Positions 26,001-49,105 are shown, counted from the stretch's first letter. The stretch is 64,000 nt of DNA from Macrostomum lignano (GCA_002269645.1 NIVC01000527.1:124001-188000); one strand, 5' to 3'. Numbers and translations are program-made. The notes: generated by a model not told the origin, from the letters alone.

Positions 26001-26921
26001 ATGGATCATAAAAAAAATTGTAAAAAAAACTTACTTTTAGAAGATTTAAAGCAGCTTAATGATAGAAATGTTAAAGCTCAACAAATAAAGTCTTCTTATT
26101 TTAGTTTGTTGCCTAGCCTAGAGTAGCTGCTAGATTGTGAATAGCTATAATATAAATTTTCATTGATTCTTGATTGCAATTCTTATTGACACTAATTAGA
26201 ATTCACTTAGACATTGTAATTGTAATTGATACAAATTAGGTTTAGCTATTTAATTAGAATCTATAACTGTTTAGAGTTGTTTATAGTGGTATAATACAAA
26301 AAAAAGTAAATACAATTATCTGTAGGAAGTAACTATGACTACATCATGCTATATTTTATATTTGATACATTATTAATTTCTACTATGCTTTAATTGGCTT
26401 TTTACTAATAACTATAAGCTTATACTTTGGACTCAAATATTTTAGCTTAGATGTTAGAAAAGGCAAAAAATGCCTTTAAGTCCTACATTTAGTATATTTA
26501 TTAAAATATTTATGATTTATGACTTGTCAGCTCATTTGAATTTTTTCGAAGTTGCATTGCTTGTATATTGCATTTTTAGAAAGTAGGATGATGCTTAGTC
26601 ATTTTTTTCTTTGTTCATATGATTAGTTTCCACTTCACTCTTTTGCCTAGGAGTTTTTAGTTTGCAACACAGCAGCCCGGGCTTTCTCCTTGGTTTACAT
26701 GTACATGTGCATTACATGTCTTACCCAAATGGCACAGCAAGCCCCAGACTAGCATGTATGAGAAACAGATAATTGAGCATGTGAGCATATGGCATCAATT
26801 TCCTGGCATATTGCTCAGCCTCAGCCCCTAAAATCAAAGAATGAATTTTTATTAAATCTAGTGTGTTTAATAATCGCAGAGCTTTTAAACTTCAGCACTT
26901 GTAGTTAGTTCACTCGTTTGA

Positions 26922-29900
26922 ATGTCTGCGCGGGACTTCATTGATTGGCTACTAGTGGCCGCGGAGAGACAGCGAGCCAGTATTAGTCTGCAGCTGGATG
27001 ATTGGCATCAAGCTAGAGAACAATTGCGAATGCTGATTGACGCAGAGCCAGCTTCGCTGCAGGAGTTTTGCGATACGGAGTCTGCGCTGGATGAGGCACT
27101 AGTGGCGACAGGAGGCTGGGCAGTAAGTTGTTTATGGGATGAAGCTGAGGCAGAGTCGGCAACACGAGACCTGCTCCGTATCTTAAATCAAGCAATGGGC
27201 TCCAACTTGTCTGAACAGACTGAGTCAGCCACAGCCTCACTTCACCAGGCTGAGTCAGCCACAGCCTCACTTCACCAGATACAGTCAACCATAGACACGC
27301 TTCATCAGATTGAGTCAGCCACCGACTCGCTTCATCAGATTGAGTCAGGCTCCCACTCGCTTCACCAAGCTGAGTCAGCCACAGACACGTTTCATCAGGT
27401 TGAATCAGTTGCTTGTTTGTCTGACCAGTTAGTCTATCTCCATCAGCCATCGGGTGTTATTCAATTTACCGACTGCCTCGGTGGCAGTCTCCGAAACTTC
27501 AAAATAACGGATGCTGAATCGAATGCAGTGGTTGTGAAGCCTTACCGCATTCGGAAGTACAGCGCTAAAAGGCTTGTAGTGATTGATAAATCAGCCGGTG
27601 TTGTTATTGTTTGTCAGGCTGGCGGCGAATTGCAGTTCAGCGTTGGGCCGAAATTCAGCAAGAAAAAGTAAATTCCGATCTTTATTCATACTCTGAACTT
27701 GCCTCACCGCTCCACTAATCTCTGAATTTTCCTCACCGCTCTCTTTTCCATAAGTTTCTTATACGTAGATTATTTTCCTTCCCGCATTTTATTTTTCGTA
27801 GGCATTTAAAGCAGCCTGAAGACGCAGTGGGTGCACGCTCATTCGTGATAATATGTTGCCCTACCACCGGCCTCTTCATGGCCTGCCTCTACCGGCCATC
27901 CGTGCGCACAGCTTTTATAAACTCAACTACCAATTTGACGCATCCTGTACGCTTAGCGTGGAACTCTACGATCAAACAACTGGTCGTGCTTGATGAAGTT
28001 GACAGCTGTCAGTACTTGTTAAACCTGTTTTCCATTACCGAGGAGAAGAAATATGTATTTGAACTGAAATCAGAGTCCCAGTCCAGTGAGCCAGTGAAGT
28101 CCCTGGCCACTCCGTGCGTGCTGTGCAGCAGCAGCGGCACTCTGCTGTCTGTGCTGAGCTCCGAGGGACCGCAGATTGTCTGCATGGATGACGCCTGCAC
28201 TTCAGTGCTGAGAACTGTTCGCCTATCGGTCAGGAAACCAGTGACTGACATGTGCTGGAGTGACCAGACACTGCTTGTCTGCTCCGGTGGAGAAGTCTGT
28301 GCGATGCAGGAGGTTATTGATGATGCTGATGACAGGTGAGAGCTATTTAAATGTATGATTTTGCTCAGCTTAATCTGTATCATTGATTGTCATTTCCGTT
28401 CATTTTTATTGTAGAGAATTTATCGCTGAGTCTGCAATTGTGACTAAAAAAGTTGGTAAGAAAAGAGCTGCTTCGCGTGCTGAAGCGCTCACTCAGCCTG
28501 TCTCACCCACAGCTTCAGTAGTTAACTTAGCAGATGTGGTAGAGACAGTTGCCTGCTATCAGCCTATCTTAGCTACAGACTCTGTCTCCATAGCCAGTCT
28601 GTCAGATCAGTGCTTCGTTGTCTCGCGATCAACGCATTCTATATTCGTGTACAACTCACATTGGAACTGTGTTGGTAGCCTTAACGTGACCAATCACGAT
28701 GGATCTGCAATAGTTATTCGTCCCCATTGCATCCGAGCATGCAGCGAAGGTCAGCTGATTGTTATCCTAGACCAGGCCGGTCAAACTGTGACCGTCTGCC
28801 AGCCAGATGGCCAACTGCGCTTTCAAGTTGGACCGAGATTCAGCAGCTGGTGGGTTGGTTGGAATTGGTATCGATGGTTTTTATCGAACCAGGATAGAGT
28901 TGGGGGTAGCAGCTCCGAGCTGCGGTTGCAGGATAAGAGTTGCATTGTACAAGTTTAATCAGTCTTTGTAGGTGCGCTCTGCTATTGCGGCACATTTGTT
29001 TGTTTTTTGATTTTTTAGTCGAAATTTTGTTTGAGTTGAATCTGAGCTTCAATTGCTGCCACAAATGTGTGCGCTATGTTTGCCTGGAGGGGTTGTAGCC
29101 TGGTGGTTAGAGCGTCGGACTCTCGACTAAAAGGTCAGGGGTTCGATTCTCGGCCTACTCAGACCAATTTGTGTCCTTAAATTGCTTCAGTTCACCCAGC
29201 TTTAAAATGAGTGCCAGCTAGATTAAACAGCCGTGCGCAACCTTTAGATGCGCTGCGCAATAGCTGCGGCTGAGCTGTCGGTTGCACATCTGCCCATTGG
29301 TAGAATCAAAAAATTATTGATTAATAATAATATTGATTAATAAATCAATATTATTATTATTTGGGCAGTCAGGCCCATTCCGCTGAACCTTGAGCACCCA
29401 CACGCTCACACAGGGTGTACAGCGGCCCTGACTTTCTCATCATGTTCGGCATGTACACTCTCCGAGAGTGCCAGGACGTAACACTCGCAAATATAGCAAA
29501 ATTGTTTGAAGGCCCGCTTGTTTGCATTGCAGCTAAAATTTAAATGCTCATAACTCCGAATCAGTTGCACTTACAATAATAATTCTAAAACAGTACAACA
29601 TAGCATATATACAGCGTAGGGTTAGTGAGATAACTTTATGACAGCTAAAGCATATTTATAAGAAATTAGCTAAAAACCCGTCTGATAATTTATTGCAAGC
29701 TAATTGTTGAATTAGTAACGCTAACAGTTTATCTGCATAAAAAGCATAGCAAGTTTTAAACGAGTTGCAAGATTCAATGTAATGACACAAACAGCTCGTA
29801 ATCGTAGATTAAGCAGATTAAAGCCTTGACAAATTATAACTACACCTATTCTGGAGCTTCTGTGGTTCGAATAGGATGCTTTTTTGTAGAAAATCGATTA

Positions 29901-32900
29901 TAAATACACGCACGGACTCGTGAACAAGCGGGCCTTCATAATTATTTTGCACTATTTACGAGTGTTACGTCCTGGTACAACGGTAAGTTCTAGTGGTCCT
30001 CTTGAATTCAACCAGGTTACTTTTGTACGAGAGCCTTCTCAGCCCCTTGATATGGTGTAGTAACTGGCATGCACCGTACTGTACTTGGCGTACATAGTGC
30101 TACTCATCTTCAATTTGTTAGCAGTCATTAAGGACGATATTTATATTTTCCGTATTTCAGTTACAGCCTAGCGAACAGCGAGGACGCCGTCAGTACAGGC
30201 GACGTGTTGATAATTTGCAATCCGAATCGCGGCCTGTTTCTTGTGTCTTTAAACGGGCCGACTGTTGGGAAAATGACAGTTAAAAAGAACCAAATTCGGT
30301 TGAAACGCCCGGTTCGTCTGGCTTGGAGCTGCGAGCGTCGAATAGTATTTGTAGTGGATCAGGCTGGCAAAAATCGCTACGGACTGGCCGCCTTCTCTGT
30401 GCAGCAGCAATTTGTACCGAATATGCTGCAACAGTGTGCTGTCTTGCCAGATCAGCTTCTATCTTTGAGCACGCCTTGCGTTCTAGCCAGCGCTGAGAGC
30501 ATCTTGATCTCTTTGCTCACCAGTGAAGGGCCCAAGATTCTGTGCCTGAGCAGCGACTGCTTAAGTATTGTTCGAGTGGTCAGACTGAGCTTGGCCGGTG
30601 CCGTCAGAGACATGTGCTGGCTGCCGGACAACCGGCTAGGAATCTGCAGCGATGGTGCCTTATGGACGGTGGATTCTGGAAGCTGCAGTTTGCATCCGGA
30701 AAAGTTGGTTGTTTTCATATTTTTACAATCTATTTTATCGTCATTTACCGCACATTAAATGACGTTTATCTTTCCTGGTTCTGGAGTGAGCCGTTTTTTT
30801 AATTCCCAAAATATTCAGTCCGGAAGGAAACCAACCAATCAGCTTCGACGAGATAGCTACCAGAAAATCAATAACCATCGTTACTTTGTTCGAAAAATTC
30901 GTTGCCTATTATCGATTCCGTGTCTCCAAACTTGCCTTGTACAAGTGACTAAAATTAAAAGCCTAAAAGCTACGTTAAAACTTTGTTGCAGAAAGCTAAG
31001 GGACTCGAACGACCCAAGATTCGCTAAAAGCACAGCGAATGCCTCTGCTGTATCAGCTGCTTACCTGTCTGGCCAGTGCTATATGCTGGAGCAGCCTACT
31101 CAAGCTGTTCGAGTATACGATTCGTTTGGCAATCAGCTTGGCGAATTGGCAGTCACCGACCCGACTAGTGGAGAGACAATTTCCAATTTGCGGCCGCACT
31201 GTGTCCGGGCAAGCCAGAAGCTTCAACTGGTGATAGTGCTGGACAGGGCGGCCTGCTCTGTGCATGTGTGCCGGCCAGATGGTGGGCTCTATTTCAGCGT
31301 TGGGCCCCAGTTCAACGATGCGTAAGATGGGATTCTATATGAAATGATTGCAATAATTACCAGTAGACAATAGTTTATGGTTTACAGGTATCTTCAAATA
31401 ATCCATTGCAGTTTCTTTCCCAGCTTCTCTAACTGTAAAATTGTGTGTTCTGTACATGTACTGTTATCCTCGGGTCCTTTGAAACTTCAAAATAGCAATC
31501 CCGACCGCTCAGGATTTTGTGTCTCGTCTCAGCTCTCTTTGCTTTTCTCTCCTTTCCTCCTCACTTCTATTTTTTGATTTAAAGTTCTAAAATTAGACAG
31601 CTGCTGCAATTCTGAGCTGGTACCTTTCTTGCTGCAAATTTTCTCGGCTAGTTTTAATTCTGCCTGTGCCTCTAAATAACTACTTGCAGCTTCAGTCTGC
31701 TGACCCCCGAGGATGCAGTCGCTGCCGACAGCATTCTAGTAATCTGCAGTCCGGAGTTCGCGCTCTACCTGGTGTCGCTAAAACGCCCAGCCACTTGGCG
31801 AGCTGTCGTCACGAAACGGCGCTGTGGACTCGCCTGTCCTGTGCGCCTGACCTGGCTGGCCTCCCGTCAGTGGCTAGTCGTAGCCGACCAATTGCCTGAT
31901 AGGGTTTTCTACAGAATCCAGCCGTTCTCTATCAGCTCAAACGAGAAAGCGGCTACGCTATTTAAGCAGAGCTCGCCGGTTGTTATTGAGTCGCTGACTA
32001 GGCCGAGCCTGCTGTGCGGTCGGGACTGCATCCTGGCAGCTTGCAGCAGGCCGAACAACTCAAATATTATAGTGCTCATCGCCGCTGGAGCCCACCAGCT
32101 TGTGCAGCAATTCTTCGATGGAGAGGCAACTGTTGACAGTCTGGCGGTAACCGACCTGTTCTGGTGGGACCAGCGCCTGGCTGGTTGCCATGGCAACAGG
32201 CTGTTGCTATGGCCCGATGTTCACTACGAAAGGTTAGTATCATAATTATAATGATTTCATCAAGAACAGAGAATATATTAGTAACAGCTGACTTCAACTC
32301 ACTACTGCACTACTGCTAGTGCTACATGTATGTTCCCATCAATATGGCTAGCAGTAGTATAAGGCGGGCATTCTCTATGCCTTTTTCAAATTTAATATCG
32401 TGTATTTCTTATTTATCGAGTTAATAGAGAACTTGTTTGATTTCTTCCAGCTACAGCGATGCCTCGTGCCAGCCGTACGTCGAGTCTGCGGCCTTCTTAT
32501 CGCCTGACCGAGGCTTCGTCCTTGAACTGCCATCCGGTTCTGTCCAGCTGTCCAAGTCGCTTGGCCATTTGTCGGCCGACAAGTTAAGGCTGACCCAGTC
32601 GGGACAGGCCGAGTTCGTGCCGCAGCCAGCGCGAGTTCGAGTCTGCTCGGAGCGCGGCCTCCTCATCTTGGTTGACCCGTCAGCTGAAGCTGTTCACGTT
32701 TGCGACTCGGAGGGCGGACTGTGGTTCTCAGTTGGACCGCGATTCGGCACTGAGTGAGTTTGAAGCTTCATCATTTAGTTTTTTGCTTGTCCTTATCAGC
32801 CAGCTCAAGGGATTGCTAGTTAAGCAGAGTTGGCAGCGGTTAGTACGCATTGGCTGTTTGCGTCACCCCTGGAGGCAGCAACAGTGAGCCTGCTTTGACT

Positions 32901-33849
32901 GGGAAAGCAGCTATGTACAAGCTGGGAGTTGCCAGCACTGTATAACCCGTAACAAGAGGCAACTGGAATCTTTTAATTATCTTGAGAATGCGTATTCAAC
33001 TGGGTTGGTGCAACAATGGTTTACATTGTATCTTTCAGTATTTGCATTAGGAGATATTTCCATAGTACATTATTGCTTTCTATTGGCTGTGACTGGGGTC
33101 GTATCCTCAGCTTTTGTTTGTTAAGATAAAAGGGACTTTAAAAAACAGCTGCCAAAAGTATCATAGATACAGCACCAATCTGTCATGGATATTAAACCAA
33201 AAGCTAGCTCCATCTTTCAAACTGATGATTTACTTCACCTTTACGCATCTTCAGCTTGTCGCTGTCAAAGCCATCAGACGCCATCAGCACTGGCGAGCTG
33301 CTTGCGATCTGCTCGCCTGACAGGGGCCTCTTCCTGGTGTCCCTGGAGCAGCCCAGCCAGTGGAGAACCACAATAAAAAAAGAGCGCAACAAGCTGCGCC
33401 GGCCGATCCGCCTGGCCTGGAGCGGCTCTCGCCAGCTGCTCATCGTGCTTGACGAAGTCTCCACCGACAGATTCTCCGTGAGCATCTTCCAGATCGTGAA
33501 GAGCCCTACTGCTGCCACGCTGCATCTCCAGGCCGCTCTTCGCGACCCCGTTCGCTCCCTGGCCGTCCCCAGCGTGCTGAGCAGCAGCGGCGGCTTCCTG
33601 CTGTCTGCGCTCACCGAGGAGGGGCCTCGGCTGCTGAGCGTGGCCGACGACTGCTCGGCTGTCAGCACCGTCGCCGACTGCCAGCTGCCTGCGGATGGCG
33701 GCGCCGTCACCGACATGAGCTGGGCGGGGCGGCAGCTCTGGCTGTGCTGCGGTGGCAAGTTGATTAAGCCTGACTTGGCCCCGTCTTTGTCTTCCATCAC
33801 TTCAAAGTCATCAGTCCAGCCTGATGGACCAGTGATTTCCAGTGTTTAA
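26922..33849 (+). CDS. Multi-propeller gene 1: helical N-terminus, about 6 x 10-aa linker, four NHL-like beta-propellers (8 exons)
   Basis: Exons are 26922-27667, 27802-28335, 28415-28849, 30161-30703, 30992-31321, 31690-32232, 32451-32753 and 33255-33849 (stop). All seven introns are GT-AG and phase 2. Recurrent motifs are P(H/R)xIRVC..LVIxD..V.VC.PDG.L.FSVGP.F and PEDAVSTG..L.IC...RPVRLAW...V.DMCW. Confidence 0.8.
29088..29290 (+). mobile_element. tRNA-derived SINE in an intron of gene 1
   Basis: The head has an A box (TAGCCTGGTGGTTAGAGC) and a B box (GGTTCGATTC). The body GTGTCCTT...CTTCAGTTCACCCAGCTTTAAAATGAGT is SINE2-like. There is no proper acceptor stem. Confidence 0.7.
29468..29978. 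mobile_element. MITE of about 510 bp with TIRs of about 55 bp
   Basis: The left end is GTGCCAGGACGTAACACTCGC...GAAGGCCCGCTTGTT and the right end is AACAAGCGGGCCTTC...CGAGTGTTACGTCCTGGTAC. No TSD was identified. Confidence 0.8.
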
Positions 33850-34766
33850 TTCGTCTAGATGTTCAATAGATAATCTCGGGAAGTCTGAGTATTCTGACTA
33901 TCAAGTATTAAACTATTCTGCCTGACTTTCTATAGTTTAGCTAGGAGTAGTTAAAACATTACAATACAATTGCAAAATTTTAAAAGCTTTACTTAGAGTT
34001 TTTACCCTTTTTGAAAAGAGAACAGTTGATTCTTTATTCACTGGCTTTCATTCGATGTTAGTTTTAGTTTGCTAAGAAGTGTCTGTTTAATAAAGTGTCT
34101 GATTAGATGATGCATACTTTTTTCACCTCGATAATAATTTACCATGACTAGAAGGAAATTTTTCCAGTAGTAGTATTTTATGCCTGTTTTGCTGTTAGAC
34201 TCTTCATATTAATTTATTTATCTAACAAAAATTATATTTGTTCTACTGTTCGTTATCCAATAAAATTAATTTTCAATTTTCACGAAACCAACTGATGCTA
34301 AAATCAGTTGCTACAGCTCGGGCCCGGGACGGGACGCATTTTCTTTTTCTTTAAAACTTTGAAATTGACCCGCGTCTTTCTAGTAAATGTAGCTGTGTAC
34401 TAGGGGGCACCCGTGGCGCAGATTGAGCGACATTGTCGCACAACCGGCGAGATGCATTACTGCCCATTCCGCCGACTCCCCTGAGCAGGCACGCAAGCGC
34501 GCGGATACGTACGCAGGCACACACACAGGAGTGTACAGCGGCCCTAACTTTATTTTTCGTTAGGCCTGTACACTTCACTGTGTCTTTGGGGGTTGGCCAT
34601 CAAGAGCGTTAATCGCACGAGAAGAGCCAAGCCGAGATTCCAATTTAGCCCCAAATTAATGTGACTGCACTAGAAATCGAGCCTGGGCCGCAGCTGGAGC
34701 GCCGCGCTTGACCTCTAGGCTACTCTTCGAAAGCTACTTACGTTACAATATTATGCTTTCCAATAA

Positions 34767-34779
34767 GTTCCATGGCAAC
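34767..34779. promoter_or_regulatory. Imperfect RFX X-box upstream of multi-propeller gene 2
   Basis: GTTCCATGGCAAC is one base short of GTTNCCATGGNAAC and ends 15 bp before the ATG at 34795. Confidence 0.35.
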
Positions 34780-34794
34780 GAATAATATTTCAGC

Positions 34795-37700
34795 ATGGAT
34801 TCGCCGGCCGTTGACGCCATGCCGCAGTCCAGCAGCTTCGTTGAGCAGCTTCAACTGGCTGTGCAGAGGCGCCGGACTGCTGTGGCTGCGGAGATGGCCA
34901 GCCGAAGCCGGGCTCGAGACCGCCTGCGGGCCATCGTCGATATGGAGCTGCCAGCCTCTCTAGAGGAGCTGCTGGATGCTGAGGCTGTCTTGGATGAGGC
35001 TCTCAGTGATGAGTCCAGCTGGGCAATCAGCTGCTCTTGGGATGAGGCTGCGGCGGAGTCTGCGACTATCGAACTGCTCAGAGTGATGAAGAAACTTCTT
35101 GATGCCTCAGGAGCTGAGTCAGCCACTGATTCGTCAAGTCAGGCTGTGTCAGCTACTGGTGCATCAAAACAGGCTGTGTCAGCTACTGGTGCATCAAAAC
35201 AGGCTGTGTCAGCTACTGGTGCATCAAAACAGGCTGTGTCAGCTACTGGTGCATCAAAACAGGCTGTGTCAGCTACTGATTCGTCAAATCAGGCTGTGTC
35301 AGCTACTGGTGCATCAAAACAGGCTGTGTCAGCTACTGATTCGTCAAAACAGGCTGTGTCAGCTACTGGTGCATCAAAACAGGCTGCGTCAGCTACTGGT
35401 GCATCAAAACAGGCTGTGTCAGCTACTGATTCGTCAAGTCAGGCTGTGTCAACTACTGGTGCATCAAAACAGTCTGCTGCGTCCGTCGCCAGCCTGTCAG
35501 GCCAGCTCCTTGTGCTGGAGCAGCCATCAAATGTCATTCGGAATTTCGGCTCTCCTGGCGCTGCAGCCTCGGTCAGTCACCTGACTGTGACGAACCCTGG
35601 TGGGTCTGCGGTGGCTCTGCAACCCCATCGCATTCGGGTCTGCAGCAAACGGAAGCTGGTGATTGTAGTTGACAAAAGTGCCGGTGTTGTGGCCGTGTGT
35701 CGGCCTGACGGTCAGCTTGAGTTCAGCGTTGGGCCAAAGTTCAGCTGCCACAAGTTAGTGAACCCGATTTAATAAAGTATACTTTTGCACGATTTCATTT
35801 AAAGCTTGAATTCCACTTTAGAAAGCTCGTGCAACACCCAGAGGACGCAGTGAGTACAGGTGACCAGCTCGTATTCTGCTGTCCAGACTCTGCGATCTTG
35901 ATGGTGTCCATCGCACGTCCTAAGAGTTGGCGTACGACACTCGTGAAGGAGCTGCTCAAGCTCAAAAGGCCTGTGCGTCTAGAGTGGCTGTTGAAGCCGA
36001 AGCTGCTAATCGTTCTTGACGAAGTTGGAAAGTGTCACTATAAACTGTACGCATTTTCCATCTCCCTGACAAAGACGTCTGCTAATTTAAAAGTAAAGTC
36101 CCAGTCCAGTGCTCCAGTGAAGTCCCTGGCCACTCCGTGCGTGCTGTGCAGCAGCAGCGGCACTCTGCTGTCTGTGCTGAGCTCTGATGGACCGCAGATT
36201 GTCTGCATGGATGACGCCTGCACTTCAGTGCTGAGAACAGTTCGCCTATCGGTCAGGGAACCAGTGACTGACATGTGCTGGAGTGACCAGACACTGCTTG
36301 TTTGCTCCGGTGGACAGGTTACTGATTGTGGCAGGTGAGAGAGCCTGAACTGTCACATTTTGATTGCGGAACAACCTGAGCTGTGTGCTGCTTTATTTCC
36401 ATTGCAGAGAATACCAGTATTTTCCAAAGCTGACCAACAGTCAAGCTTCAGAGCTCAGCAAAGCTACTCAGCCTGGAGCCTCAGCTGTTCCACCCCAGAC
36501 TCTGCTTACAATGGGCTCGTCGGTACAAATTTACTCGGCTGCATTTCTGTCGGGCCAGTGCTTTTTTCTTCAGCTGAAGTCTCCAGCTGTTCGAGTCTGC
36601 GACTCGCAGTCAAGCCAAATTAGCAGCTTGTCAGTAACCAGCTCAGCTGCTGCGTCAGTTGCGTCAGTTGCATCGCAGCAGCCGCGCGCTGTTCGAGTTT
36701 GCCGTAGCCGTCGCTTGGTGTTCATCGTATACCCGAGTGCGGTGCTCGTCTGCCAGCCAGATGGCCAGCTCAGCTTCCAGGTTGGGCCAAAGTTTAGCGA
36801 CGCGTGAGTTTACTGAGCTCAATAGTTCATAAGCTGCCGTGTATCGAAGATAATTCGCAGTTGCAGAGTTTCATACATAATGAAACTGACAAAGTCCATA
36901 AAGAGAAAAGACACTTTCTGCAACACAAATTTTCGAGGTTTACAAAGTTTCGTTCGGGTTGGGCAGCTCAGTGTCGCTTCGTTGGAATCCCTTCTTACTG
37001 TTCCTACCAGCCACAGGGAGTCAGTAGAATTTCGATCCGTTGCAGTCTTTGCTTTAAGCTTGACTGCAGGGTTTCGTAGTCCGGTGTCAGGGTTACGCGG
37101 TAAAATAGTGGTCGCCAGATTCCGGTCCATGGGAGACATGCAGCCCGAGAAGCCTCTCAGTCCGGCCCTCCGGTCATTTGAAACTTCACCATAGCAATCC
37201 GGCCCGCTCAAGATTGGTGTCTCTTTTTTGAGCTCTCTTTCCCCTCTCTTCTCACTCTCCTGTACCCTCTCTTCCCTATCCTCTCTCCTCTCTCCTCTTC
37301 TCCCTCTCCCTCTCGTCTCTTCCCTCTTATTTCTCTCTCCGTTCTTCTCTCTTATCTTCTATCTTTTCTTTCATCCAATCTCTCGCCTGTCCGAGTCTCG
37401 CTATGGGATTCTTTATCTGGTCCTTCAGTTAAAATTTTACTAGATAAAGCACTCATTCTGCACTGCTAACTGACTTTTTCCAATGCAGCTACAGCCTGGA
37501 AGCCCCTGAAGACGCTGTCAGCACCGGTCAGTTGCTCGCCATCTGCAGTCCCGAGTTCGCACTCTACCTGGTGTCGCTAACCAAACCGAACGCCTGGCGG
37601 ACCACCGTGCGGAAAGGCCGCTGCGACCTCGCCTGTCCGGTGCGTCTCGGCTGGATGGCCTCGCGCAAGTGGCTGGTGGTGGCCGACGAGACCGCGGCTG

Positions 37701-39393
37701 CGTCCACCGGGCGCAGAGTGCGACCCGGTGCGTACAGAATCCTGGCCTTTACCATCACTGTCATCAAGACATCGGCCGCGCTGTCTCCGCAAGGATCTCC
37801 AGCGGGTGGAGTTCCGGTTGAGTCGCTGACTAGGCCGAGTCTGCTGTGCGGCCGGGATTGCATCTTGGTGTCTGTCAGCGGTACCAGCGGATCCAAAGTT
37901 CTTCTGCTGTCTGGCAGTCAGTGCGATTCAGTGCAACAGTTTACCGTTGAAGATGCGGGTTCTTCATTGGCTACTAACTTGTTTTGGTGGCAGCGAGAGC
38001 TGGCTTGTTGCCATGGAAACAAGCTACTACTCTGGCCGGAAATTAGCCATGAGAGGTTTGTCATTCTAAATGTTTTTTCAGCTGTTGTATTTTGCTATAT
38101 CCATCCGGTCGCTTCCATTTTCACTCGATTGCTTCAATTGTCACTCGGTCGCTTCAATTGTCACTCGGTCGCTTCAATTGTCACTCGGTCGCTTCAATTG
38201 TCACTCGGTTGCTTCAATTGTCACTCGGTTGCTTCAATTGTCACTCGGTCGCTTCAATTGTCACTCGGTCACTTCAATTGTCACTCGGTCGCTTCAATTG
38301 TCACTCGGTCGCTTCAATTTTTGTTCGGCTGCTCTTGCTGGCTTATTATTACTGATAAGAACCGAGCCAACACAGAGCCAAAAGTGTCACTAGAAGCTGT
38401 TAATGTCCGCCATGCCAATTCCGCCACAGCTGCAGCAGTTGGACCCCATCAGCGGAGACAGCTGCGCCAAAACAGCAGAGTCCAGCTGATGTCACCTCTG
38501 ACATCCTGGTATCCTCAGCAGCCTGCCTGTCTGATCAGCTGTACATTCTGGAGCCGACTTCCAGATCCGTCCTTGTGACGTCAATGGACTGTCGGGACCG
38601 CCCGGCCAGCAGGCAGCTGCTGACGCTGACCAAATCTGACGGCTCAAAGCTCAGCCCGCAGACAGCGCGAATCCGAGTCTGCGAGGAGCGCGGGCTTCTC
38701 ATTCTCATTGATGAGCTGAGTCAAATTGTCTATGTCTGCAGCTCGGAGGGTAGACTGCAGTTTTCTGTTGGTCCTCGATTCAGCACTAAGTAAGGCGAAT
38801 TGAAATTGTAATCATCTTTGCTCAATTGCCTGTAAAAATTAATTTCATTGTTCACCTTCCGGATCTGCAGCTTTCTGCTTTCTAAGCCATCAGATGCCAT
38901 CAGCACTGGCGAGCTGCTGGCGATCTGCTCACCTGACAGGGGCCTCTACCTGGTGTCCCTGGAGCAGCCCAGCCAGTGGAGAACCACAATAAAAAAAGAG
39001 CGCAACAAGCTGCGCCGGCCGATCCGCCTGGCCTGGAGCGGCTCCCGCCAGTTGCTCATCGTGCTTGACGAAGTCTCCACCGACAGATTCTCCGTGAGCA
39101 CCTTCCAGATCGTGAAGAGCCCTACTGCTGCCACGCTGCATCTCCAGGCCACCCTGGGCGACCCTGTGTGCTCCCTGGCCGTCCCCAGCGTGCTGAGCAG
39201 CAGCGGCGGCTTCCTGCTGTCCGCGCTCACCGAGGAGGGGCCTCGGCTGCTGACCGTGGCCGCCGACTGCTCGGCTGTCAGCACCGTCGCCGAATGCCAG
39301 CTGCCTGCGGATGGCGGCGCCGTCACCGACATGAGCTGGGCGGGGCGGCAGCTCTTGCTGTGCTGCGGTGGAAAGCTGATTCTTGACACCTGA
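34795..39393 (+). CDS. Multi-propeller gene 2: helical N-terminus, 12 x 10-aa linker, three NHL-like propellers (6 exons)
   Basis: Exons are 34795-35753, 35822-36334, 36408-36803, 37489-38055, 38430-38789 and 38871-39393 (stop). All introns are phase 2. The gene is paralogous to gene 1. Confidence 0.8.
38115..38320. repeat. 20-bp minisatellite (GCTTCAATTGTCACTCGGTC) in a gene 2 intron
   Basis: Tandem repeats. Confidence 0.93.
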
Positions 39394-40303
39394 AGTTAGT
39401 TGAGTTGGCATGCATTTACTTGTAGATTGGCTAAGTTGCTTACTAGCAGATAGTGCGAGTTACCAGTGAGCGTGTGCATGAGTGCGTGCCAGCGTGCGGT
39501 ACTGGCGCGCTTGTATGTGCTTAGTAGTCAGCGGAATGGGGCATGATTCCTACAGCTCTTCGATTTTGTATCTTTACTTATTCAAGCGTCTACTACTACT
39601 ATCAAAAAAGAGATTTAGGCTAGCAATAAGGCTCGCAGATGTTATGCTCTCAGATAAGCCTGAAGCAAACGGAAGGATCAGGAATAACCGGAACCAGACC
39701 AAACTGTCAAACTACTTGTCAATCGGAGCTTGATAATTAAAGACTATTATGTAAACTTTAGCTCAAAAGATGGAGTCTCTTCTTATCCTTTTGCTTGTTC
39801 TCTCCTATCCTAGGTCCAATTTTTGTCACTTTTGCCAAATTCAGCTTACTGGTGTCACTGTGAGCAGAATGACGTATTATTTGTGTACATACATGTAGGT
39901 TACTCGGGCTCCACTTTATGAGCTTAAGTTGACAGGCCCTTTACTTCGTTTATTTTCGGTGTTAATCGATGGTGGCCAACCACGTGGCGAATTATTAATC
40001 TAAGCTGTGCTGTAATTTAACGCTTTTGTGTTGCCTCGGCATCGTTATTTGTGACTTTTCTGGCTGTACAGTGCATGCGGTGATTGCGATAGAGTTTTGT
40101 TTATGATTACTGCCTATTACTGTGTTATTTATTCAACACTTATTGCAGAGCAACTATTTGTTCAATACTGTGCCATATTCAATGCTCTATGCAAATAACA
40201 TAGGCTGCCTTGTCAGCTCGTGTTGACATTTTATGACCATTGTTTTCTTCATTTTATTTAACTTCAAGGTAGGACTCAGAGCCTAGAAATTCGGTTTCTT
40301 ATA

Positions 40304-40317
40304 GTTTCCATGGCAAC
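40304..40317. promoter_or_regulatory. RFX X-box upstream of multi-propeller gene 3
   Basis: GTTTCCATGGCAAC is a full match to GTTNCCATGGNAAC and is homologous to the gene 2 site. Confidence 0.45.
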
Positions 40318-40330
40318 GAACAGTTTCAGC

Positions 40331-43300
40331 ATGAATTGCCAGGCTTTTGACGCCCTGCCGCAGCCCAGCAGCTTCGTTGAGCAGCTCCAACTGGCTGTGC
40401 AGAGGCGCCGGACTGCTGTGGCCGGGGAGATGGCCAGCCGAAGCCGGGCTCGAGACCGCCTGCGGGCCATCGTCAGTGTCGAGCCGCCAGCCTCGCTGCA
40501 GGAACTGCTGGATGCTGAGGCTGTCTTGGATGAGGCTCTCAGTGATGAGTCCAGCTGGGCAGTCAGCTGCTCTTGGGATGAGGCTGCGGCGGAGTCTGCG
40601 GCTAGCGAACTGCTCAGAGTGATGAAGAGACTTCTTGAAGCCTCAGGAGCCGAGTCAGCCACTGATTCGTCAAGTCAGTCTGTGTCAGCTACTGGTGCAT
40701 CAAAGAAGGCTGTGTCAGCTACTGGTGCATCAAAGCAGGCTGTGTCAGATACTGGTTCATCAAAGCAGGCTCTGACTGATTCGTCAAGTCAGGCTGAGTC
40801 AGCTACTGATTCGTCAAGTCAGGCTGAGTCAGCTACTGATTCGTCAAGTCAGGCTGAGTCAGCTACTGATTCGTCAAGTCAGGCTGAGTCAGCCACTGGT
40901 TCGTCAATTCAGGCTGTGTCAGCTACTGGTGCATCAAAACTGGCTGAGTCAGCTACTGGTGCATCAAAACAGGCTGTGTCAGCTACTGGTGCAGTAAAAC
41001 AGGCTGTGTCAGCTACTGGTGCATCAAAACTGGCTGAGTCAGCTACTGGTGCATCAAAACAGGCTGTGTCAGCTACTGGTGCAGTAAAACAGGCTGTGTC
41101 AGCTACTGGTGCAGTAAAACAGGCTGTGTCAGCTACTGGTGCAGTAAAACAGGCTGTGTCAGCTACTGGTGCATCAAAACAGGCCGTGTCTCTCGCCAGC
41201 CTGTCAGGCCAGCTCCTTGTCCTGGAGCAGCCATCAAATGTTATTCGGTTTTGCAATTCTTCTAGCCCAGCAATATGGATCCGGAACCCGATTGTGACGA
41301 GCCCTGAAGGGTCTGCGGTGGCTCTGCAGCCCCATCGCATTCGGGTCTGCAGCAAACGGAAGCTGGTGATTGTAGTTGACAAAAGTGCCGGAGTTGTGGC
41401 CGTCTATCGGCCTGACGGTCAGCTTGAGTTCAGCGTTGGGCCAAAGTTCAGCAGGAAACGGTAGATTTATTGCAATAATTTGTTTATCCAGAATTTATCC
41501 AGAAAACCTGGATGCTAGTGAATAACCACAAATTATTTTTATACAGAATCTTTCTTCACTCTTCAGTCATTAAGTGTACCTCTCCACTCCCTCAACAGTC
41601 CTTTAAAGTACCTCTCCACTCCCTCAAAAGTCCTTGAATGTGCCTCTCCACTCCCTCAAAAGTCCTTGAATGTGCCTCTCCACTCCCTCAAAAGTCCTTG
41701 AATGTGCCTCTCCACTCCCTCAACAGTCCTTGAATGTACCTCTCCACTCCCTCAACAGTCCTTGAATGTGCCTCTCCACTCCCTCAACAGTCCTTGAATG
41801 TACCTCTTTCCCCTTCCTTAAATCTTCCGCTCCACAATCTCCGTCACCGAGTCTCATTAATAACCAATGATATCTGGTGTCGCATATCCATTACCCAGGC
41901 TGCTGGAGCTGCCAAAGGACGCAGTGAGCACGGAGAGCCATCTGGCAATCTGCTGTCCGAGCAGCACCATCTTCGCGGTGTCCCTTGCCGATCCGGCAGT
42001 TCGAACGGCTGTCCCAAACAAAATAATCAATCTGACGCGTCCTGTGCAACTGGCGTGGCACTCAGAGCTACAAAAGCTGGTCGTTCTCGATGAAGTTTAC
42101 TTCCGTCAGTACACGGTGAACCTGTTCGCCCTTGTAAATGAACAGACATTTACTGTAGCGCTGAAGTCTCAGACGCAGTCCAGTGCTCCAGTGAAGTCCC
42201 TGGCCACTCCGTGCGTGCTGTGCAGCAGCAGCGGCACTCTGCTGTCTGTGCTGAGCTCTGAGGGACCGCAGATTGTCTGCATGAACGATTCTTGCACTTC
42301 AATGCTGAGAACAGTTCGTCTATCGGTCAAGAAACCGGTGACTGACATGTGCTGGAGTGACCAGACACTGCTTGTCTGCTCCGGTGGAGAAGTCTGTGCG
42401 ATGCACGAGGTTATTGATGATGCTGATGACAGGTGAGAAGACTTAATACTAATACTGTTTACGTCCCGAAGAAAGATTTTTTTGTAATAAATTTACAATT
42501 GCAGTAAAACGCAAGCAGATTTAGGCAAGGCTGGCTGCGGGACTCAGCAATCAACAGCAATGGCAAGCGCTCTGTCTGTACCTGTTTCGCATATCGAAGC
42601 AGCTCAGCCCGTTGCTGGGATCCACACGACCAATAGAACAATCATCCCAGCTTCCAACTCCCTATCTGAGTTTGTCGTGTCAGCGGCCTGCTTGTCAAAC
42701 CGGATTTTCGTTTCCAACCTGCAGTTCTCTCAGATCAGGATGCTCAGCGCCAATGGAGATGAGCTGGGGTGCCTCAACGGATCCCACCTGCCGCAGCATC
42801 CCAGCCGCATCCGAGTTTGCGACAAGCGCCAGCTGCTTATCATCCTGGATCAGGCGGGTCAAACTGTGACCGTCTGCCAGCCAGATGGCCAACTGCGCTT
42901 TCAAGTTGGACCGAGATTTAGCTGCAGGTTGGTTGTTTTATTGCGATTTAGTAGTCTGGTAGATTTGTTTTGTTTTAAATAAAGAATCTAGACTAGAAAC
43001 TAGTCTAGTGTGTCTAGATTCTTTAATTAGTTGTTCTCTTAAATTGCTAATCTTGCTACTTATTAGCTCACGGGGTAATAACTGAAATGCCAAGGCTAGA
43101 AGCTACATATAGTTTAATTGAAAAAAATTTGCTCCATTCTTTGTTGGCTCCTCAACGGGAGGGGGGCTGATTGCTAGTTTCCTAGCCATAAAATTGGCAC
43201 GGTTCGGCTCATTGGCTTTATGAATCTATTTTATCATTGTTAGCCACAGATTCTAAAATATCTAAGATAGGAATAACAGCTTTCTACTTTCAGTTCAGTA

Positions 43301-46300
43301 GCAAATAAGAACACAAAAGCTATTTTATAAGAATAAAGGCAGCCGAAATGACTTTGATAAGTTTATAAGCCAACAAGCTTGCAGGCGTAAACAACTTGCT
43401 AATTGGTTCAGCAATGATGTACATTAGCCAGTCCACTGAAATGTACATGGCAGCTATAGGCTGAAATTCCCAGAAAGGCCTTAAAAATTGGGGCGGGGGG
43501 GGTAGTGTGGAAAGGCGCGGTTGGCGGGTTTAAGCTGGGGGTCAGGGCCAATAAATGAGCCTTGGCTTTAAAAATACATTAACATGCTTCTGCTTAACTA
43601 ACTACTGAACTGAAAGTATCTTACACGCAAATGTGCTGAGTGGCCCATCTAGTTATTCTAGTATCTGTGTTCTTAGCTGACGGTGTAACAGTATGTGTAA
43701 CAGAGATGATAAAATTGATTGATAAAACTGAGTCAAGCTGTGGCATCCATTTTTATGATGTTTAGGTACATGGACTGTACGTGGATTATAAAACTATCAT
43801 AGAATCCTAATTTTCAAAACGAAAAGCTCTATGAATATCAATCAATCGAACTATAAGTAAGGCAAAATATGAAAAAAGGTGAACATTGGTTCTGTAATGT
43901 TTTCTTCGGTAAAACCTGTCCTAAAATGTTCCAAGAAACGTGGTTTCCCGTCCTTATACTGAATTATTCTGAAACTGTTTTTTTCTTCCCAGCTACAGCA
44001 TCGAAAACCTAGAAGACGCGGTCAGCACTGGCAGCCTGCTGGCCATCTGCTGCTCCGACAAGGGCATTCTGTTTGTGTCGCTCCAGCATCCCAGCGCTTG
44101 GAAGACTCTCGTTAATAATAGTGAAACATTAAACGGATTGATGCATCCGATTAGTCTGGCCTGGAGTAGCAAGCTGCAAAATCTGCTCGTTGTTGATCAG
44201 GTTGCCAGGCAACCAGATGGCTACAGATTCCACGCTTTCAAGGTGACGGCAAAGTCAATGGCTGCTTTGCTGACTCTGCAGGCTGCTCATCCGGATGAAC
44301 TTGTGTCACTGAGCAGACCTTGCGTTCTGGCCAGCGATGAAGGCATCCTCGTCTCCGTGCTCACCGATGAGGGGCCCAGGATTCTGTGTCTGAGCAGCGA
44401 CTGCTCAAGCATTGTTCGAATGGTCAGACTGAGCTTGGCTGGCGCTGTCGGTGACATGTGCTGGCTGCCGGACAACCAGCTGGGCGTCTGCTGCGATGGC
44501 GGCTTGTGCGCGCCCCGCACTGCTGGCGGCCTGCACCCTGAGAAGATGTTAGTAGCGACTAATTGTTGATCCAGAGTTACCTTCCCAGTTCGCTTTTCTC
44601 ACTCCCAATTTAAATCTATAGTAGGTCCGCCGCCCTCCCAGATGCTGGGCCGGCCTCCCAGATGCTGGGCCGGCCTCCAAGATCCTCAGTTGCTGGGCCA
44701 GCCTCCCAGATCCTCAGTTGCTGGGCCAGCCTCCCAGATCCTCAGTTGCTGGGCCAGCCTCCCAGATTTCAGTTGCTGGACCAGCCTCCCAGATCCTCAG
44801 TTGCTGTGCCAGCTTCCCAGATCCCTAGTTGCTGGGCCGGCCTCCAAGATCCTCAGTTGCTGTGCCAGCCTCCCAGATCCTCAGTTGCTGGGCCAGCCTC
44901 CCAGATTTCAGTTGCTGGACCAGCCTCCCAGATCCTCAGTTGCTGTGCCAGCCTCCCAGACCCTCAGTTGCTGGGCCAGCCTCCCAGATCCTCAGTTGCT
45001 GTGCCAACCTCCCAGATCCTCAGTTGCTGGGCCAGCCTCCCAGATCCTCAGTTGCTGTGCCAACCTCCCAGATCCTCAGTTGCTGTGCCAGCCTCCCAGA
45101 TCCTCAGTTGCTGTGCCAGCCTCCCAGATCCTCAGTTGCTGTGCCAGCCTCCCAGATCCTCAGTTGCTGGGCCAGCCTCCCAGAGTGTCAGTTTCTGGGC
45201 CAGCCTCCAAGATCCTCAGTTGCTGTGCCAGCCTCCAAGATCCTCAGTTGCTGTGCCACCCTCCCAGACCCTCAGTTGCTGGGCCAGCCTCCCAGATCCT
45301 CAGTTGCTGTGCCAACCTCCCAGATCCTCAGTTGCTGTGCCAGCCTCCCAGATCCTCAGTTGCTGTGCCAGCCTCCCAGATCATCAGTTGCTGGGCCAGC
45401 CTCCCAGATCCTCAGTTGCTGGGCCAGCCTCCCAGATCCTCAGTTGCTGGGCCAGCCTCCCAGATCATCAGTTGCTGGGCCAGCCTCCCAGATCCTCAGT
45501 TGCTGGGCCAGCCTCCCAGATCCTCAGTTGCTGGGCCAGCCTCCCAGATCAACAGTTGCTGGGCCAGCCTCCCAGATCCTCAGTCCCCAGTGGCTACACA
45601 CCGGCACACTAATCTGCTGTTAATAATGCAAGCGGCGCAGCAAACTGAATTGCAGTGAGGACACCGACGCAATCCACTCCGACAGTCCGTCTGCCGCCAT
45701 CGCTAGTCTGGTGCTGCTGACGCTCGCCACATCGGAGCTGGCCGTCTCTGCCGGCGGGCTGGCCGACCGCTGCTTCATCCTGGATCAGCCATCGGGAGCC
45801 ATTCGGGCGTATGACTCCAGGGGCAGCCAGATCGGCCGGCTCACTGTGACAGGCCCCGCCGATGAGGCTATTCGGAATCTGCGACCCCACCGAGTTCGAA
45901 TCTGCAAACAGCGTCGGGTGGTCATTGTGGACAGGATAAACTGCTCGGTGCTGGTCTGCGAGTCTGACGGCTCTCTGAGCTTCCGCGTTGGGCCGAACTT
46001 TGCCAATGACGGGTCAGACTTTGAGTAGAATATTTTACTGTTTGCTTGCTGCTCTAATCGCTGCGAGGCAAGGCAGGCGGGTTATTTTAGGCGTAGCTTA
46101 ATTTGAGAGCTCGTCTTGCAATAGTTAAGGGTGTAGTCAGAGCAAACCTTCTCGCCCACCGCCAACTTATTTGTGCGTATATTTCATTCTCGCACCCTAA
46201 ATCTCTAGGGTCACAGATTAGGACTATCAATTGACTTCTGAAAGCCCATTGGCCGACATAACAGTGCACAAAATCATAATAACATAATAGCAAACTTGAG

Positions 46301-49105
46301 CACAGAGGCTAGAGGTAATTTGGGGTGGGGTGGGTCGCCCAGCCAATCAGAACTGGGTACGCGACAAACTGGGGCAGACGGGATGGGGGAGTGGGAATTA
46401 CGGAGGGTTTAGAGGGCAATGTCCGGCCCATCTGGCCAGAGATTGGTCATTGGTGCGGGTGCACCCGAGCGCAAAACTAACTCCACTTCCACTGTCTGCC
46501 TCTTTACGCTCCTCTGTTCCTTCTCCCTGCCCACTTTATCTGGTTTTTTAATCCTTTGATCAACCACTTTAATTCCTATTTCAGTCAACCAATGACCGCT
46601 CCGGAAGACGCAGTCAGCACGGGCCTGTTACTCGCCATCTGCAGCCCAGAGTTCGGGCTCTACCTGGTGTCGCTATCCGAGCCGGACGCCTGGCGGACCA
46701 CCGTGCGGAAAGGCCGCTGCGGTCTTGTTTGTCCGGTGCGCCTGGGCTGGCTGGCCTCGCGCAAGTGGCTGGTGGTGGCCGACGAGACGCCGAACTCCAA
46801 CCAGTACAGGCTGCTGGAATTCGTCATCAAAATTGGCAACAAGTCTGGCGGCGAGCAGCTGGCACCGCAGGGCTCGCCATTCGCTGTGCAGTCGCTGAGC
46901 AGGCCGAGCCTGCTGTGCGGAGACGACTTTGTCGTGCTGGCCATCGCCGAGTCGGTCGCGTCGCGCCTGCTCCTGCTGACGGGCAGCGGACTCCGGCTTA
47001 TTAGCCAATTCCACGTCAGCGGAGAAGATCCCATTGCCGATCTGTTTTGGTTAAAGCAGCCGCGTCAGCTAGTTGGTTGCCATGGCAACAAGCTGCGTCT
47101 CTGGCCGACGATCTGTTACGACAGTTGCGGCAGCTTTGAGGGGCCCTCGGAGGCGACGCCGCCGTTACCAGACGCGCCCGCCTCCATCGCCTGCCTGTCA
47201 GACCGCTGCTTTATTCTAAACCTGCCGTCCGGAACTGTCCGAGTGTCCGAATTGTTAATTAATGCCGTATCGAACGGGGACAAGCTTGCGCTGACCAAAC
47301 CGACCGGTGCCCAATTTGACGCGAGGCCAACGCGCGTCCGAGTCTGCGCCGAGCGCAACCGCCTCATCCTGGTTGACCAGACGGCTAACATGGTTCACCT
47401 GTGCAGCTCCGAGGGTCGCCTGTTGTTTTCAGTTGGTCCGCAGTTCACTAGCAGGTGAGCGGTAACTGTGATTTAGTTAGCTGTGCTCATTCCACTGATT
47501 AATGTCAGGAGGCAGACAGGTTGAACTCGTAAGACGAAGCAGTCCAAGGCCCGTATATTTCAAGCAGCTGTGTATTCAAATTAGCGAATAATAATTACTA
47601 GCTATTAGCAAAAGCAAATTAAAACAAAAGGTACAGAGAACACAATCTCTTGTGTACCTTGGATGCGTACGCAGGCGCACACACTCACAGGGTGCACTGT
47701 GCACTCTGGCAAGATTTGTCTCATCGTCCTCAAAGAGGGTGCAGTTGGGAATCTCGGGCAGCGTTCTAGCATGCCTTTGCCCCGCCATGACAACGCAGCG
47801 CATTCGTTCGATGAGGCGTTTTGCCACCATGCAATACCGTCTCCAGAATGGTCCGCGCAGATGTTACTAATTGTAAAAGTGTAAACTTTCCCATAACACA
47901 AGGCTTCAAAATTTCGCCCTGTTCTGTCAATTGGCAATCAAATCGTCGGTGTAGGCGTTGTTATCGGCGTCGACACCATCCTACGCGTCGTATTGGACTG
48001 CGAGACGCTGCTTCAATGGAGTTGAGGATCCACTTTCGTTAGTTGAGTACGACAGCTGTGACTGTCCCTGCCGGTGCAGCAAAATACACAAATCAATGTC
48101 AGGCTCATCCTCGTCTTCTGATTTAGTGCTTCGTTTAACATCCTTCGAAAACTGACCCTAGGATGAGGATTGAAAAGCAGCGCCTTATTTAGGGTTGTCC
48201 CCAAACTGATCATAAAACTGATCAAAACGCTATATTGCCTGGGCCAATACTGAATAAGATTTGACACTGCAAAGGTTGTATCAAGGCACACCTGCTTACC
48301 TACTCTAGAGCCTATCATAGATAATAGAGTTACTTTAAAAACAAACAGTATATAAAACAGTCTATCACGCGATCGGAACTACTGTTTAGTTGATATGGAT
48401 TCTTGTGAAGATTCATGCACTACTACTGCTCAGTAGTCAGTCATTCACTAGTAAATGTGGGCTTTTGAAAAGGCGTGGTAGAATTCCGCTGTTTGCTTGC
48501 CCAGGTCGGCAATCAATTTCAGGTCAAATAATTATTCATATATTGCTTCAGTTTCGCAAGTGGACCCGGCCCTCTGCTTTTTCAGCTTGTCGCTGTCAAA
48601 GCCATCAGACGCCATCAGCACTGGCGAGCTGCTGGCGATCTGCTCGCCTGACAGGGGCCTCTTCCTGGTGTCCCTGGCGCAGCCCAGTCAGTGGAGAACC
48701 AGCCTCAAGAAGGAGAACCACAATCTGAGCCGGCCGGTCCGCCTGGCCTGGAGCGGCTCCCGCCAGCTGCTCATCGTGCTTGACGAAGTCTTCATCGACA
48801 GATTCTGCGTGAGCACCTTCGAGATCGTCACCATGCAGAGCGGCGCGTTTCTGTTTCGCCAGGCCACCCTGGGCGACCCCGTTCGCTCCCTGGCCGTCCC
48901 CAGCGTGCTGAGCAGCAGCGGCGGCTTCCTGCTGTCTGCGCTCACCGAGGAGGGGCCTCGGCTGCTGAGCGTGGCCGACGACTGCTCGGCTGTCAGCACC
49001 GTCGCCGACTGCCAGCTGCCTGCGGATGGCGGCGCCGTCACCGACATGAGCTGGGCGGGGCGGCAGCTCTGGCTGTGCTGCGGTGGCAAGTTGATTGCGG
49101 CCTAA
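40331..49105 (+). CDS. Multi-propeller gene 3: helical N-terminus, about 18 x 10-aa linker, four NHL-like propellers (7 exons)
   Basis: Exons are 40331 (or 40310)-41460, 41899-42432, 42505-42927, 43993-44547, 45656-46012 or 46024 (donor ambiguous), 46585-47454 and 48586-49105 (stop). All introns are phase 2. Confidence 0.78.
41575..41805. repeat. 32-bp minisatellite in gene 3 intron 1
   Basis: Unit CCTCTCCACTCCCTCAAAAGTCCTTGAATGTG. Confidence 0.92.
43270..43655. mobile_element. MITE family copy 1 (inner IR CTACTTTCAGTTCAGTAG)
   Basis: Homologous to 49201-49622 (opposite orientation) and 62250-62620. Confidence 0.75.
44635..45585 (+). repeat. 28-bp minisatellite family, array 4, in gene 3 intron 4
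   Basis: Same unit as the arrays in RMDN1 and AVL9. Confidence 0.95.

Follow-up and report, generated by a model that had tools for sequence, protein, structure and literature searches.

In a 64,000-nucleotide (nt) stretch of the genome of the flatworm Macrostomum lignano (GCA_002269645.1, NIVC01000527.1:124001-188000, one strand; the window hereafter), three tandem paralogous genes lie on the plus strand at 26922-49105 and encode proteins of 1342, 1105 and 1462 amino acids (aa). Each protein is composed of a helical N-terminal head, a linker of decapeptide repeats and a series of four, three or four modules, which are predicted to be divergent NHL-type six-bladed beta-propellers. These proteins are probably non-enzymatic, intracellular, multivalent binding scaffolds built from the head, the linker and the propellers, a reading that we hold with moderate confidence and in which the scaffold function is the part that we infer. 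A spliced query from the cluster matches M. lignano proteins only, at 95-97% identity.

The plus-strand open reading frames (ORFs) listed across 26000-50000 alternate regularly between a type that ends in FSVGPxF and a type that starts near PEDAVSTG and ends near CxGG. Scoring of in-frame GT/AG pairs, with ambiguous junctions judged by eye, joined these ORFs into three genes:

26922-33849, plus strand: gene 1, 8 exons, 1342 aa, four propeller modules; exons 26922-27667, 27802-28335, 28415-28849, 30161-30703, 30992-31321, 31690-32232, 32451-32753 and 33255-33849
34795-39393, plus strand: gene 2, 6 exons, 1105 aa, three propeller modules, the second module type (m2) missing; exons 34795-35753, 35822-36334, 36408-36803, 37489-38055, 38430-38789 and 38871-39393
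40331-49105, plus strand: gene 3, 7 exons, 1462 aa from the ATG at 40331, four propeller modules; exons 40331-41460, 41899-42432, 42505-42927, 43993-44547, 45656-46012, 46585-47454 and 48586-49105

All 18 introns are GT-AG and all 18 are in phase 2, cutting the codon after its second base, and several are very short (68-81 nt). The three frames are intact across 1105-1462 codons and the 18 introns, and they open at an ATG or a few codons 5' of it. An alternative in-frame ATG at 40310 would add 7 aa to gene 3; the start at 40331 is preferred since its TTTCAG/C-ATG acceptor is conserved and common to gene 2.

An external check on the junctions was provided by GenBank models of near-identical cluster copies on other contigs of the same assembly, namely PAA60530 (Mlig001956g4, 1068 aa; gene 1 counterpart), PAA60523 (Mlig023818g1, 1202 aa; gene 2 counterpart, from the near-identical copy L001), PAA60524 (Mlig023818g2, 1415 aa, partial; gene 3 counterpart) and PAA60522 (Mlig024027g2, 733 aa). 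The M. lignano annotation drew on RNA sequencing (RNA-seq) through StringTie/TACO and on a de novo transcriptome, with trans-splice and poly(A) sites that had been mapped by experiment serving to delimit the genes (Wudarski et al., 2017; PMC5730564). These models reproduce 17 of the 18 junctions. In gene 2 all five are identical to those of PAA60523, and in gene 1 six of seven (junctions 2-7) are matched, with residues 275-1342 aligning to PAA60530 without gaps at 97.5% identity. For gene 3, an exon 5 acceptor at 45706 was replaced by the upstream one at 45655 on comparison with PAA60524, after which all six junctions agree; five junction peptides match outright, while the second lies in diverged sequence and its position is apparently the same. 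With complete frames and these matches, the exon chains of three parallel genes proposed in the original prediction hold, and the RNA-seq-guided models of the near-identical copies show that the family is expressed.

In the UniProt entries A0A1I8J625 and A0A1I8FRI7 a cluster gene's last exon is truncated after ...GRQLWL and runs directly into the Met of the next gene's head. Such joins fit a cryptic GT in the last exon (39340-39393) spliced to the TTTCAG/C acceptor, which lies 1 nt 5' of the ATG both at 34795 (34786-34797) and at 40331 (40325-40333). Together with the shared naming of Mlig023818g1 and Mlig023818g2, the joins suggest that the tandem genes may be co-transcribed and separated by spliced-leader trans-splicing.

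The modules have a core of about 265 aa, with an FxVGP-to-FxVGP spacing of 282-324 aa, and in an alignment of all 11 they match end to end with few gaps. Searches with tblastn recovered 22 of 22 expected half-modules in 27378-49099 on the plus strand and none elsewhere in the 64-kb window; the repeat counts of 4, 3 and 4 first read from the sequence are thereby confirmed. The off-diagonal self-match (expect value, E = 1.8e-124) places the repetition far beyond chance. The modules, supported by the alignment and by tblastn unless another basis is given, are as follows:

27381-28335, plus strand: gene 1 module 1 (type m1), blades 1-2 at the end of exon 1 and blades 3-6 in exon 2
28415-30703, plus strand: gene 1 module 2 (m2), exons 3 and 4
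30992-32232, plus strand: gene 1 module 3 (m3), exons 5 and 6
32451-33849, plus strand: gene 1 module 4 (m4, terminal), exons 7 and 8
35464-36334, plus strand: gene 2 module 1 (m1), the module whose structure was predicted (AlphaFold2, Foldseek)
36408-38055, plus strand: gene 2 module 2 (m3), exons 3 and 4
38430-39393, plus strand: gene 2 module 3 (m4, terminal), exons 5 and 6
41174-42432, plus strand: gene 3 module 1 (m1)
42505-44547, plus strand: gene 3 module 2 (m2), exons 3 and 4
45656-47101, plus strand: gene 3 module 3 (m3), exon 5 and the start of exon 6 (also PAA60524)
47102-49105, plus strand: gene 3 module 4 (m4, terminal), the remainder of exon 6 and exon 7 (also the continuous ORF 46556-47458)

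Modules of different types within one gene are 30-42% identical, whereas modules in the same position across genes are 50-78% identical. Four types follow from this correspondence:

m1: first module of genes 1, 2 and 3, 59-67% identity
m2: second module of genes 1 and 3, 53% identity
m3: third module of genes 1 and 3 and second of gene 2, 50-54% identity
m4: last module of genes 1, 2 and 3, 69-78% identity

The position-wise correspondence implies that a four-propeller gene (m1-m4) arose first, that whole-gene duplication came later and that m2 was lost in gene 2. A module is encoded by two exons, the first for blades 1-2 and the second for blades 3-6, and since all module exon boundaries are in phase 2, exon pairs could have been duplicated without a frameshift. 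The intron between m3 and m4 is present in gene 1 (32233-32450) and gene 2 (38056-38429) and is absent from gene 3 (exon 46585-47454), in what looks like a precise intron loss in one paralogue.

The fold of the modules was addressed with AlphaFold2, which was given module 1 of gene 2 as target and an alignment of the 11 modules as input. The resulting model is all-beta (predicted local distance difference test, pLDDT, 92.5; predicted template modelling score, pTM, 0.90), with 23 strands grouped 4+4+4+4+4+3 into six blades. This is the arrangement of the NHL fold, namely six blades of about 40-45 aa, each a four-stranded antiparallel sheet. When the model was compared with the PDB using Foldseek, the first matches were the NHL domains of TRIM71 (8j72, E = 4.6e-9) and Brat (1q7f, template modelling score, TM, 0.71), the structures of these two proteins giving E = 5e-9 to 8e-9. 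The NHL domains of Thin, TRIM2, TRIM3, Mei-P26 and Lin41 ranked next, and the NHL matches span TM 0.65-0.71. WD40 and strictosidine-synthase propellers are interleaved in the list at similar E, with poorer target coverage.

Profile searches point in the same direction. A HMMER search with the 11-module profile against 1.84 billion representative proteins returned 40 hits; the 15 top-scoring ones (E = 1e-255 to 3e-22) all come from M. lignano, and the others (E = 1.5e-7 to 9e-4) are canonical NHL-repeat proteins. All 10 of the remote hits that were scanned carry PF01436 (E = 1e-20 to 1e-76), and one of them also has a RING finger. Similarly, hhalign paired the module profile with the RING-NHL protein P0030 (76.7% probability, E = 2e-5) in a register of one flatworm blade per NHL repeat, for example QPHRIRVCSKRKLVIVVDKSAGVVAVCRPDGQLEFSVG opposite QPTGIDVTHDGQRMVVSDFGNHRIHVFSSDGDLLVTLG. 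None of the window's exon ORFs or full proteins has a significant domain, NHL included, in Pfam scans, and a sequence search of the PDB with one module was likewise empty; the PF01436 scores of the near-identical copies are sub-threshold (15.1-16.6 bits) and only the paralogue P0014, at 21.0 bits, exceeds the cut-off. On the strength of the AlphaFold2 model, the Foldseek ranks, the profile hits, the hhalign match and these sub-threshold scores, the modules are predicted to be divergent NHL-type six-bladed propellers, which bears out the NHL-like fold proposed for them from the sequence.

The same structural list invites the thought of an enzymatic role, with propellers of the six-bladed lactonase, strictosidine-synthase or PAL type, as strictosidine synthase structures appear in it at TM 0.65-0.68 and the remote NHL hits also match the SGL and arylesterase families. 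We regard this as very improbable: the window proteins have no Str_synth, SGL or arylesterase match in Pfam, the TRIM-type NHL domains take the top Foldseek ranks and the invariant module residues are mostly hydrophobic or Gly/Pro and occupy core positions.

A more serious contender is a regulatory role through sequence-specific RNA binding, as in Brat and LIN-41, in which electropositive top faces would read composite or multiple mRNA sites. The top structural matches do bind RNA (TRIM71 with a long non-coding RNA, Brat with hunchback RNA, and Mei-P26), eight of the 11 modules are basic (isoelectric point, pI, 7.6-9.3), and in blades 2 and 4 conserved Arg residues lie within the inner A strand or immediately ahead of it (PxRIRV, RPVRLAW). 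However, the fold does not set the ligand, as TRIM2/3, Thin and many propellers that do not bind RNA score equally, and the other three modules are neutral or acidic (pI 5.8-7.0). This reading is therefore credible but unlikely.

The helical head precedes the propellers in all three proteins:

26922-27206, plus strand: gene 1 head, about 95 aa, helical, aligning with the heads of gene 2, gene 3 and the paralogues
34795-35109, plus strand: gene 2 head, about 105 aa, with modelled helices at residues 11-49, 56-71 and 84-107
40331-40653, plus strand: gene 3 head, 85% identical to the gene 2 head

The heads of the cluster genes and of their M. lignano paralogues share the motifs F..L...LE.RR..L, E..LD..L and ..LL..L..W. 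The head had at first been likened to a TRIM-type coiled coil, and it is helical, yet four tests found no similarity of sequence or fold. The lowest E that the head profile reached against PDB sequences was 0.06, for a NudE fragment that is unrelated; aligned by hhalign with the coiled-coil region of the RING-NHL protein, the head scored a probability of 0.1%; a profile search of 5.8 billion proteins matched M. lignano proteins alone; and Foldseek with an AlphaFold2 model of the head, built on a 10-sequence head alignment, reached a best E of 1.3 with zero TRIM entries among the top 50. The gene 2 head is also without a Pfam match. The TRIM coiled coil is, moreover, much longer than this head.

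No RING and no zf-B_box was found in Pfam scans of the window proteins, the near-identical copies and the paralogues, including the members that start with Met. Likewise, the region 5' of gene 1 (23000-26921) holds no candidate RING or B-box exon and no Cys/His-rich ORF, so the absence of both domains that was noted at the outset stands. Two related UniProt entries are labelled 'RING-type domain-containing', and Pfam shows no RING in them.

Between head and propellers lies the repeat linker, which is encoded by 30-base-pair (bp) arrays:

27216-27408, plus strand: gene 1 linker, coding 30-bp array of about 6 decapeptides, ESATDSLHQI type (Tandem Repeats Finder, TRF)
35113-35476, plus strand: gene 2 linker, coding 30-bp array of 12 decapeptides, SATGASKQAV type (TRF)
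40654-41190, plus strand: gene 3 linker, coding 30-bp array of about 18 decapeptides (TRF, translation)

The decapeptides are in frame and rich in Ser, Thr, Ala and Gln, and the linker is presumably disordered. PAA60523 is 97 aa longer than gene 2, essentially through extra repeats (L001 array, 15072-16035), and this difference in repeat number between near-identical copies marks the linker as a coding variable-number tandem repeat.

The window proteins have no signal peptide, no hydrophobic or membrane segment and no recognisable catalytic or ligase domain, and the cysteine content of the cluster proteins is 3.3-3.8%. If they act as multivalent scaffolds, each propeller type would offer its own ligand surface for protein or RNA and the flexible linker would set the reach, while the head would most plausibly mediate self-association and so multiply the valency. 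A bolder version would make this a Macrostomum-specific family whose ancestor resembled TRIM-NHL proteins, then shed the ubiquitin-ligase module and gained further propellers. Its self-associating members, with four different NHL surfaces, would organise assemblies of RNA and protein, for example germline or stem-cell granules, through multivalent RNA binding. Propeller number and linker length would then tune valency and reach. We consider this version improbable.

Several observations weigh against the scaffold proposal. The fold prediction covers one module of the 11, the window proteins remain below the Pfam gathering score for NHL (PF01436, 20 bits) and the three-helix model of the head is only moderately confident (pLDDT 75, pTM 0.42). 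The top and bottom faces of the propeller do not differ clearly in the conservation of their loops (0.35 and 0.33 identity), which does not allow either face to be designated as the binding one. Searches of the literature and of supplements to M. lignano papers yielded no ligand, expression pattern or phenotype for the family. In addition, exon 1 of gene 1, which encodes the head, the linker and the first two blades, is absent from the retrieved GenBank models together with junction 1, so that its basis is the intact ORF, the splice signals and the ratio of non-synonymous to synonymous substitution (dN/dS) of the head. As a database query this exon gave zero matches, a result that is uninformative, probably since the cluster representatives are fragments. 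Compared with a near-identical copy, it aligns without gaps over 746 nt with 2 mismatches and the frame is intact in both; given these frames and a head dN/dS of 0.21-0.25 against the other heads, the exon was retained and flagged.

The nearest functional analogues of the modules would be the NHL domains of the TRIM-NHL proteins (Brat, LIN-41/TRIM71, TRIM2, TRIM3, Thin/TRIM32 and Mei-P26). They share the six-bladed NHL-type propeller, being its top structural matches, and the order of helical region, spacer and propeller, and they are intracellular, as the cluster proteins appear to be. The flatworm proteins differ in having neither RING nor B-box, in a head without detectable similarity to the TRIM coiled coil, in carrying four, three and four propellers rather than one, and in modules that are 12-17% identical to the TRIM-NHL NHL domains and do not reach the Pfam NHL model. 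They are thus not TRIM-NHL proteins, lacking the RING, the B-box and the single propeller, and they belong to the broad NHL-propeller class by fold and profile evidence, though not by the Pfam threshold.

The PF01436 NHL-repeat proteins hit by the module profile (E = 1e-7 to 1e-3) offer a second comparison. Several of these remote hits measure 1000-3900 aa and are matched along five to seven stretches, and at least two come from archaeal metagenome-assembled genomes, which indicates that proteins with multiple NHL propellers already exist, among prokaryotes. In contrast to the flatworm family, several carry surface- or secretion-associated domains (P0020 matches HYR, secretion-tail and CHU_C), they have no helical head or decapeptide linker, and their NHL repeats are canonical, whereas the flatworm modules are too divergent for Pfam. 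For animals, no description was found of an architecture in which a small helical head precedes tandem divergent NHL propellers and a ligase module is missing.

The original prediction had spoken of unrecognised genes. The genes are in fact already in GenBank and UniProt, but only as hypothetical or inconsistently named proteins, and the public gene models of the family are fragmentary and fused. The UniProt names of the fragments clash, ranging over RING-type, MMS1_N, CNH, STXB5, WDR73, PHTB1_N, ANAPC4_WD40, nuclear pore complex protein and Ig-like, and they occur on P0001, P0005, P0006, P0009, P0014 and P0016 as well as on cluster members. Most of the domain families behind these names are beta-propeller families. 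In Pfam scans no family fragment matched its automatic name, and only for the fused model P0004 is the Ig label apt.

Near-identical copies of the cluster lie on at least four contigs. Beyond these, there is a second tandem cluster of at least six genes on NIVC01001995.1 (PAA61801-PAA61810), whose products of 586-892 aa consist of a longer head, a repeat-free spacer and a single propeller; in another paralogue there are two propellers. The paralogues with one or two propellers comprise the PAA61801-PAA61810 cluster, Mlig001862, Mlig025850 and Mlig019517/Mlig024364, and they match the module profile at E = 1e-43 to 1e-22. They resemble the window genes in head motifs, disordered spacer, propeller signature motifs and tandem clustering, and differ from them in a head of about 150 aa that ends in ADNPFA, a spacer without repeats and the smaller number of propellers. 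In the search of 1.84 billion proteins, which perhaps included few other macrostomids, relatives from outside M. lignano scored no better than the generic NHL level. The family is apparently restricted to M. lignano, judging from such sequence matches, and with all close relatives in this species and a second tandem cluster among them, the suggestion of a lineage-restricted family growing by duplication is upheld.

Between paralogues, module dN/dS is 0.31-0.58 and head dN/dS is 0.2-0.8, which indicates coding sequence that is constrained but fast-evolving. The synonymous divergence (dS) is unusually low in the m4 modules (0.32-0.38) and between the gene 2 and gene 3 heads (0.10), compared with 0.76-1.4 in other parts, and this points to gene conversion in the m4 modules and to a recent such event between these two heads.

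A family that is lineage-restricted, tandem-expanded and fast-evolving, with a length-variable linker, could also suggest structural parts of a flatworm-specific cell structure (sperm, cytoskeleton or gland cells), in which the propellers would be packing or bridging units. Such a combination is common in reproduction-related and structural lineage-specific genes. The signal peptide expected for secreted structures is, however, absent, and the four propeller types are kept distinct by position, which suggests distinct partners rather than bulk packing; a structural role is accordingly rather doubtful.

Comparison with the near-identical copy L001 bears on the possibility that the genes have no function, being duplicates in decay or artefacts of annotating a polyploid, repeat-rich genome. 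The two copies are unevenly related: gene 1 is 97-99.7% identical, and exons 2-3 of gene 3 (41899-42927, against L001 22245-23297) are 79-81% identical. Exons are no better conserved than introns (about 4% and 3% mismatches), the genome has many redundant copies (PMC5730564), and the public models are fragmentary and fused. However, with 1-2% divergence in gene 1 the copies are too close for the exon and intron comparison to reveal constraint, the three frames are intact, dN/dS between paralogues is 0.2-0.6 and RNA-seq-guided models exist, and loss of function is hardly credible.

The surroundings of the cluster consist of GC-rich coding stretches interspersed with AT-rich or minisatellite-rich spacers, an alternation that fits the description of the M. 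lignano genome as one in which simple and tandem repeats make up 15% and near-identical duplicated blocks are numerous (PMC5730564). Three ORFs that match known families lie 5' of the cluster:

6002-6469, plus strand: DUF5662-matching ORF (E = 8e-18)
9480-10019, minus strand: RMD1-3 (regulator of microtubule dynamics) ORF (E = 1e-22)
18622-19347, plus strand: Avl9 (transport protein) ORF (E = 5e-19)

Avl9 is also found 5' of the cluster in L001, so this neighbourhood is conserved between the copies. Unrelated coding sequence follows 3' of the cluster at 55557-57633, and a fused UniProt model starts with the cluster's last exon and runs on into spectrin and immunoglobulin domains. A 28-bp minisatellite, CAGTTGCTGGGCCAGCCTCCCAGATCCT, occurs with its reverse complement at four window sites (8206-8723, 18257-18603, 19356-20051 and 44659-45584), one of which is intron 4 of gene 3 while others lie in and around the Avl9 gene; as a result of this repeat, every frame contains long but spurious ORFs. 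Around the cluster there are also many long minisatellite arrays, whose periods range from 19 to 40 bp and whose strands are strongly skewed in composition (16405-16923, 17368-17935, 21758-22821, 50726-51616, 53451-55378 and 56229-57125). An Rfam search of the whole window matched no RNA family.

To summarize, M. lignano genes that had been listed as hypothetical or given contradictory automatic names now have a fold and a domain plan assigned to them, a result that concerns annotation in a single lineage. Should the propellers bind RNA or protein in the manner of TRIM-NHL propellers, the family would constitute a natural experiment on the effect of valency and spacer length on binding. RNA interference and transgenesis are feasible in M. 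lignano, so the binding hypothesis could be tested in the animal itself.

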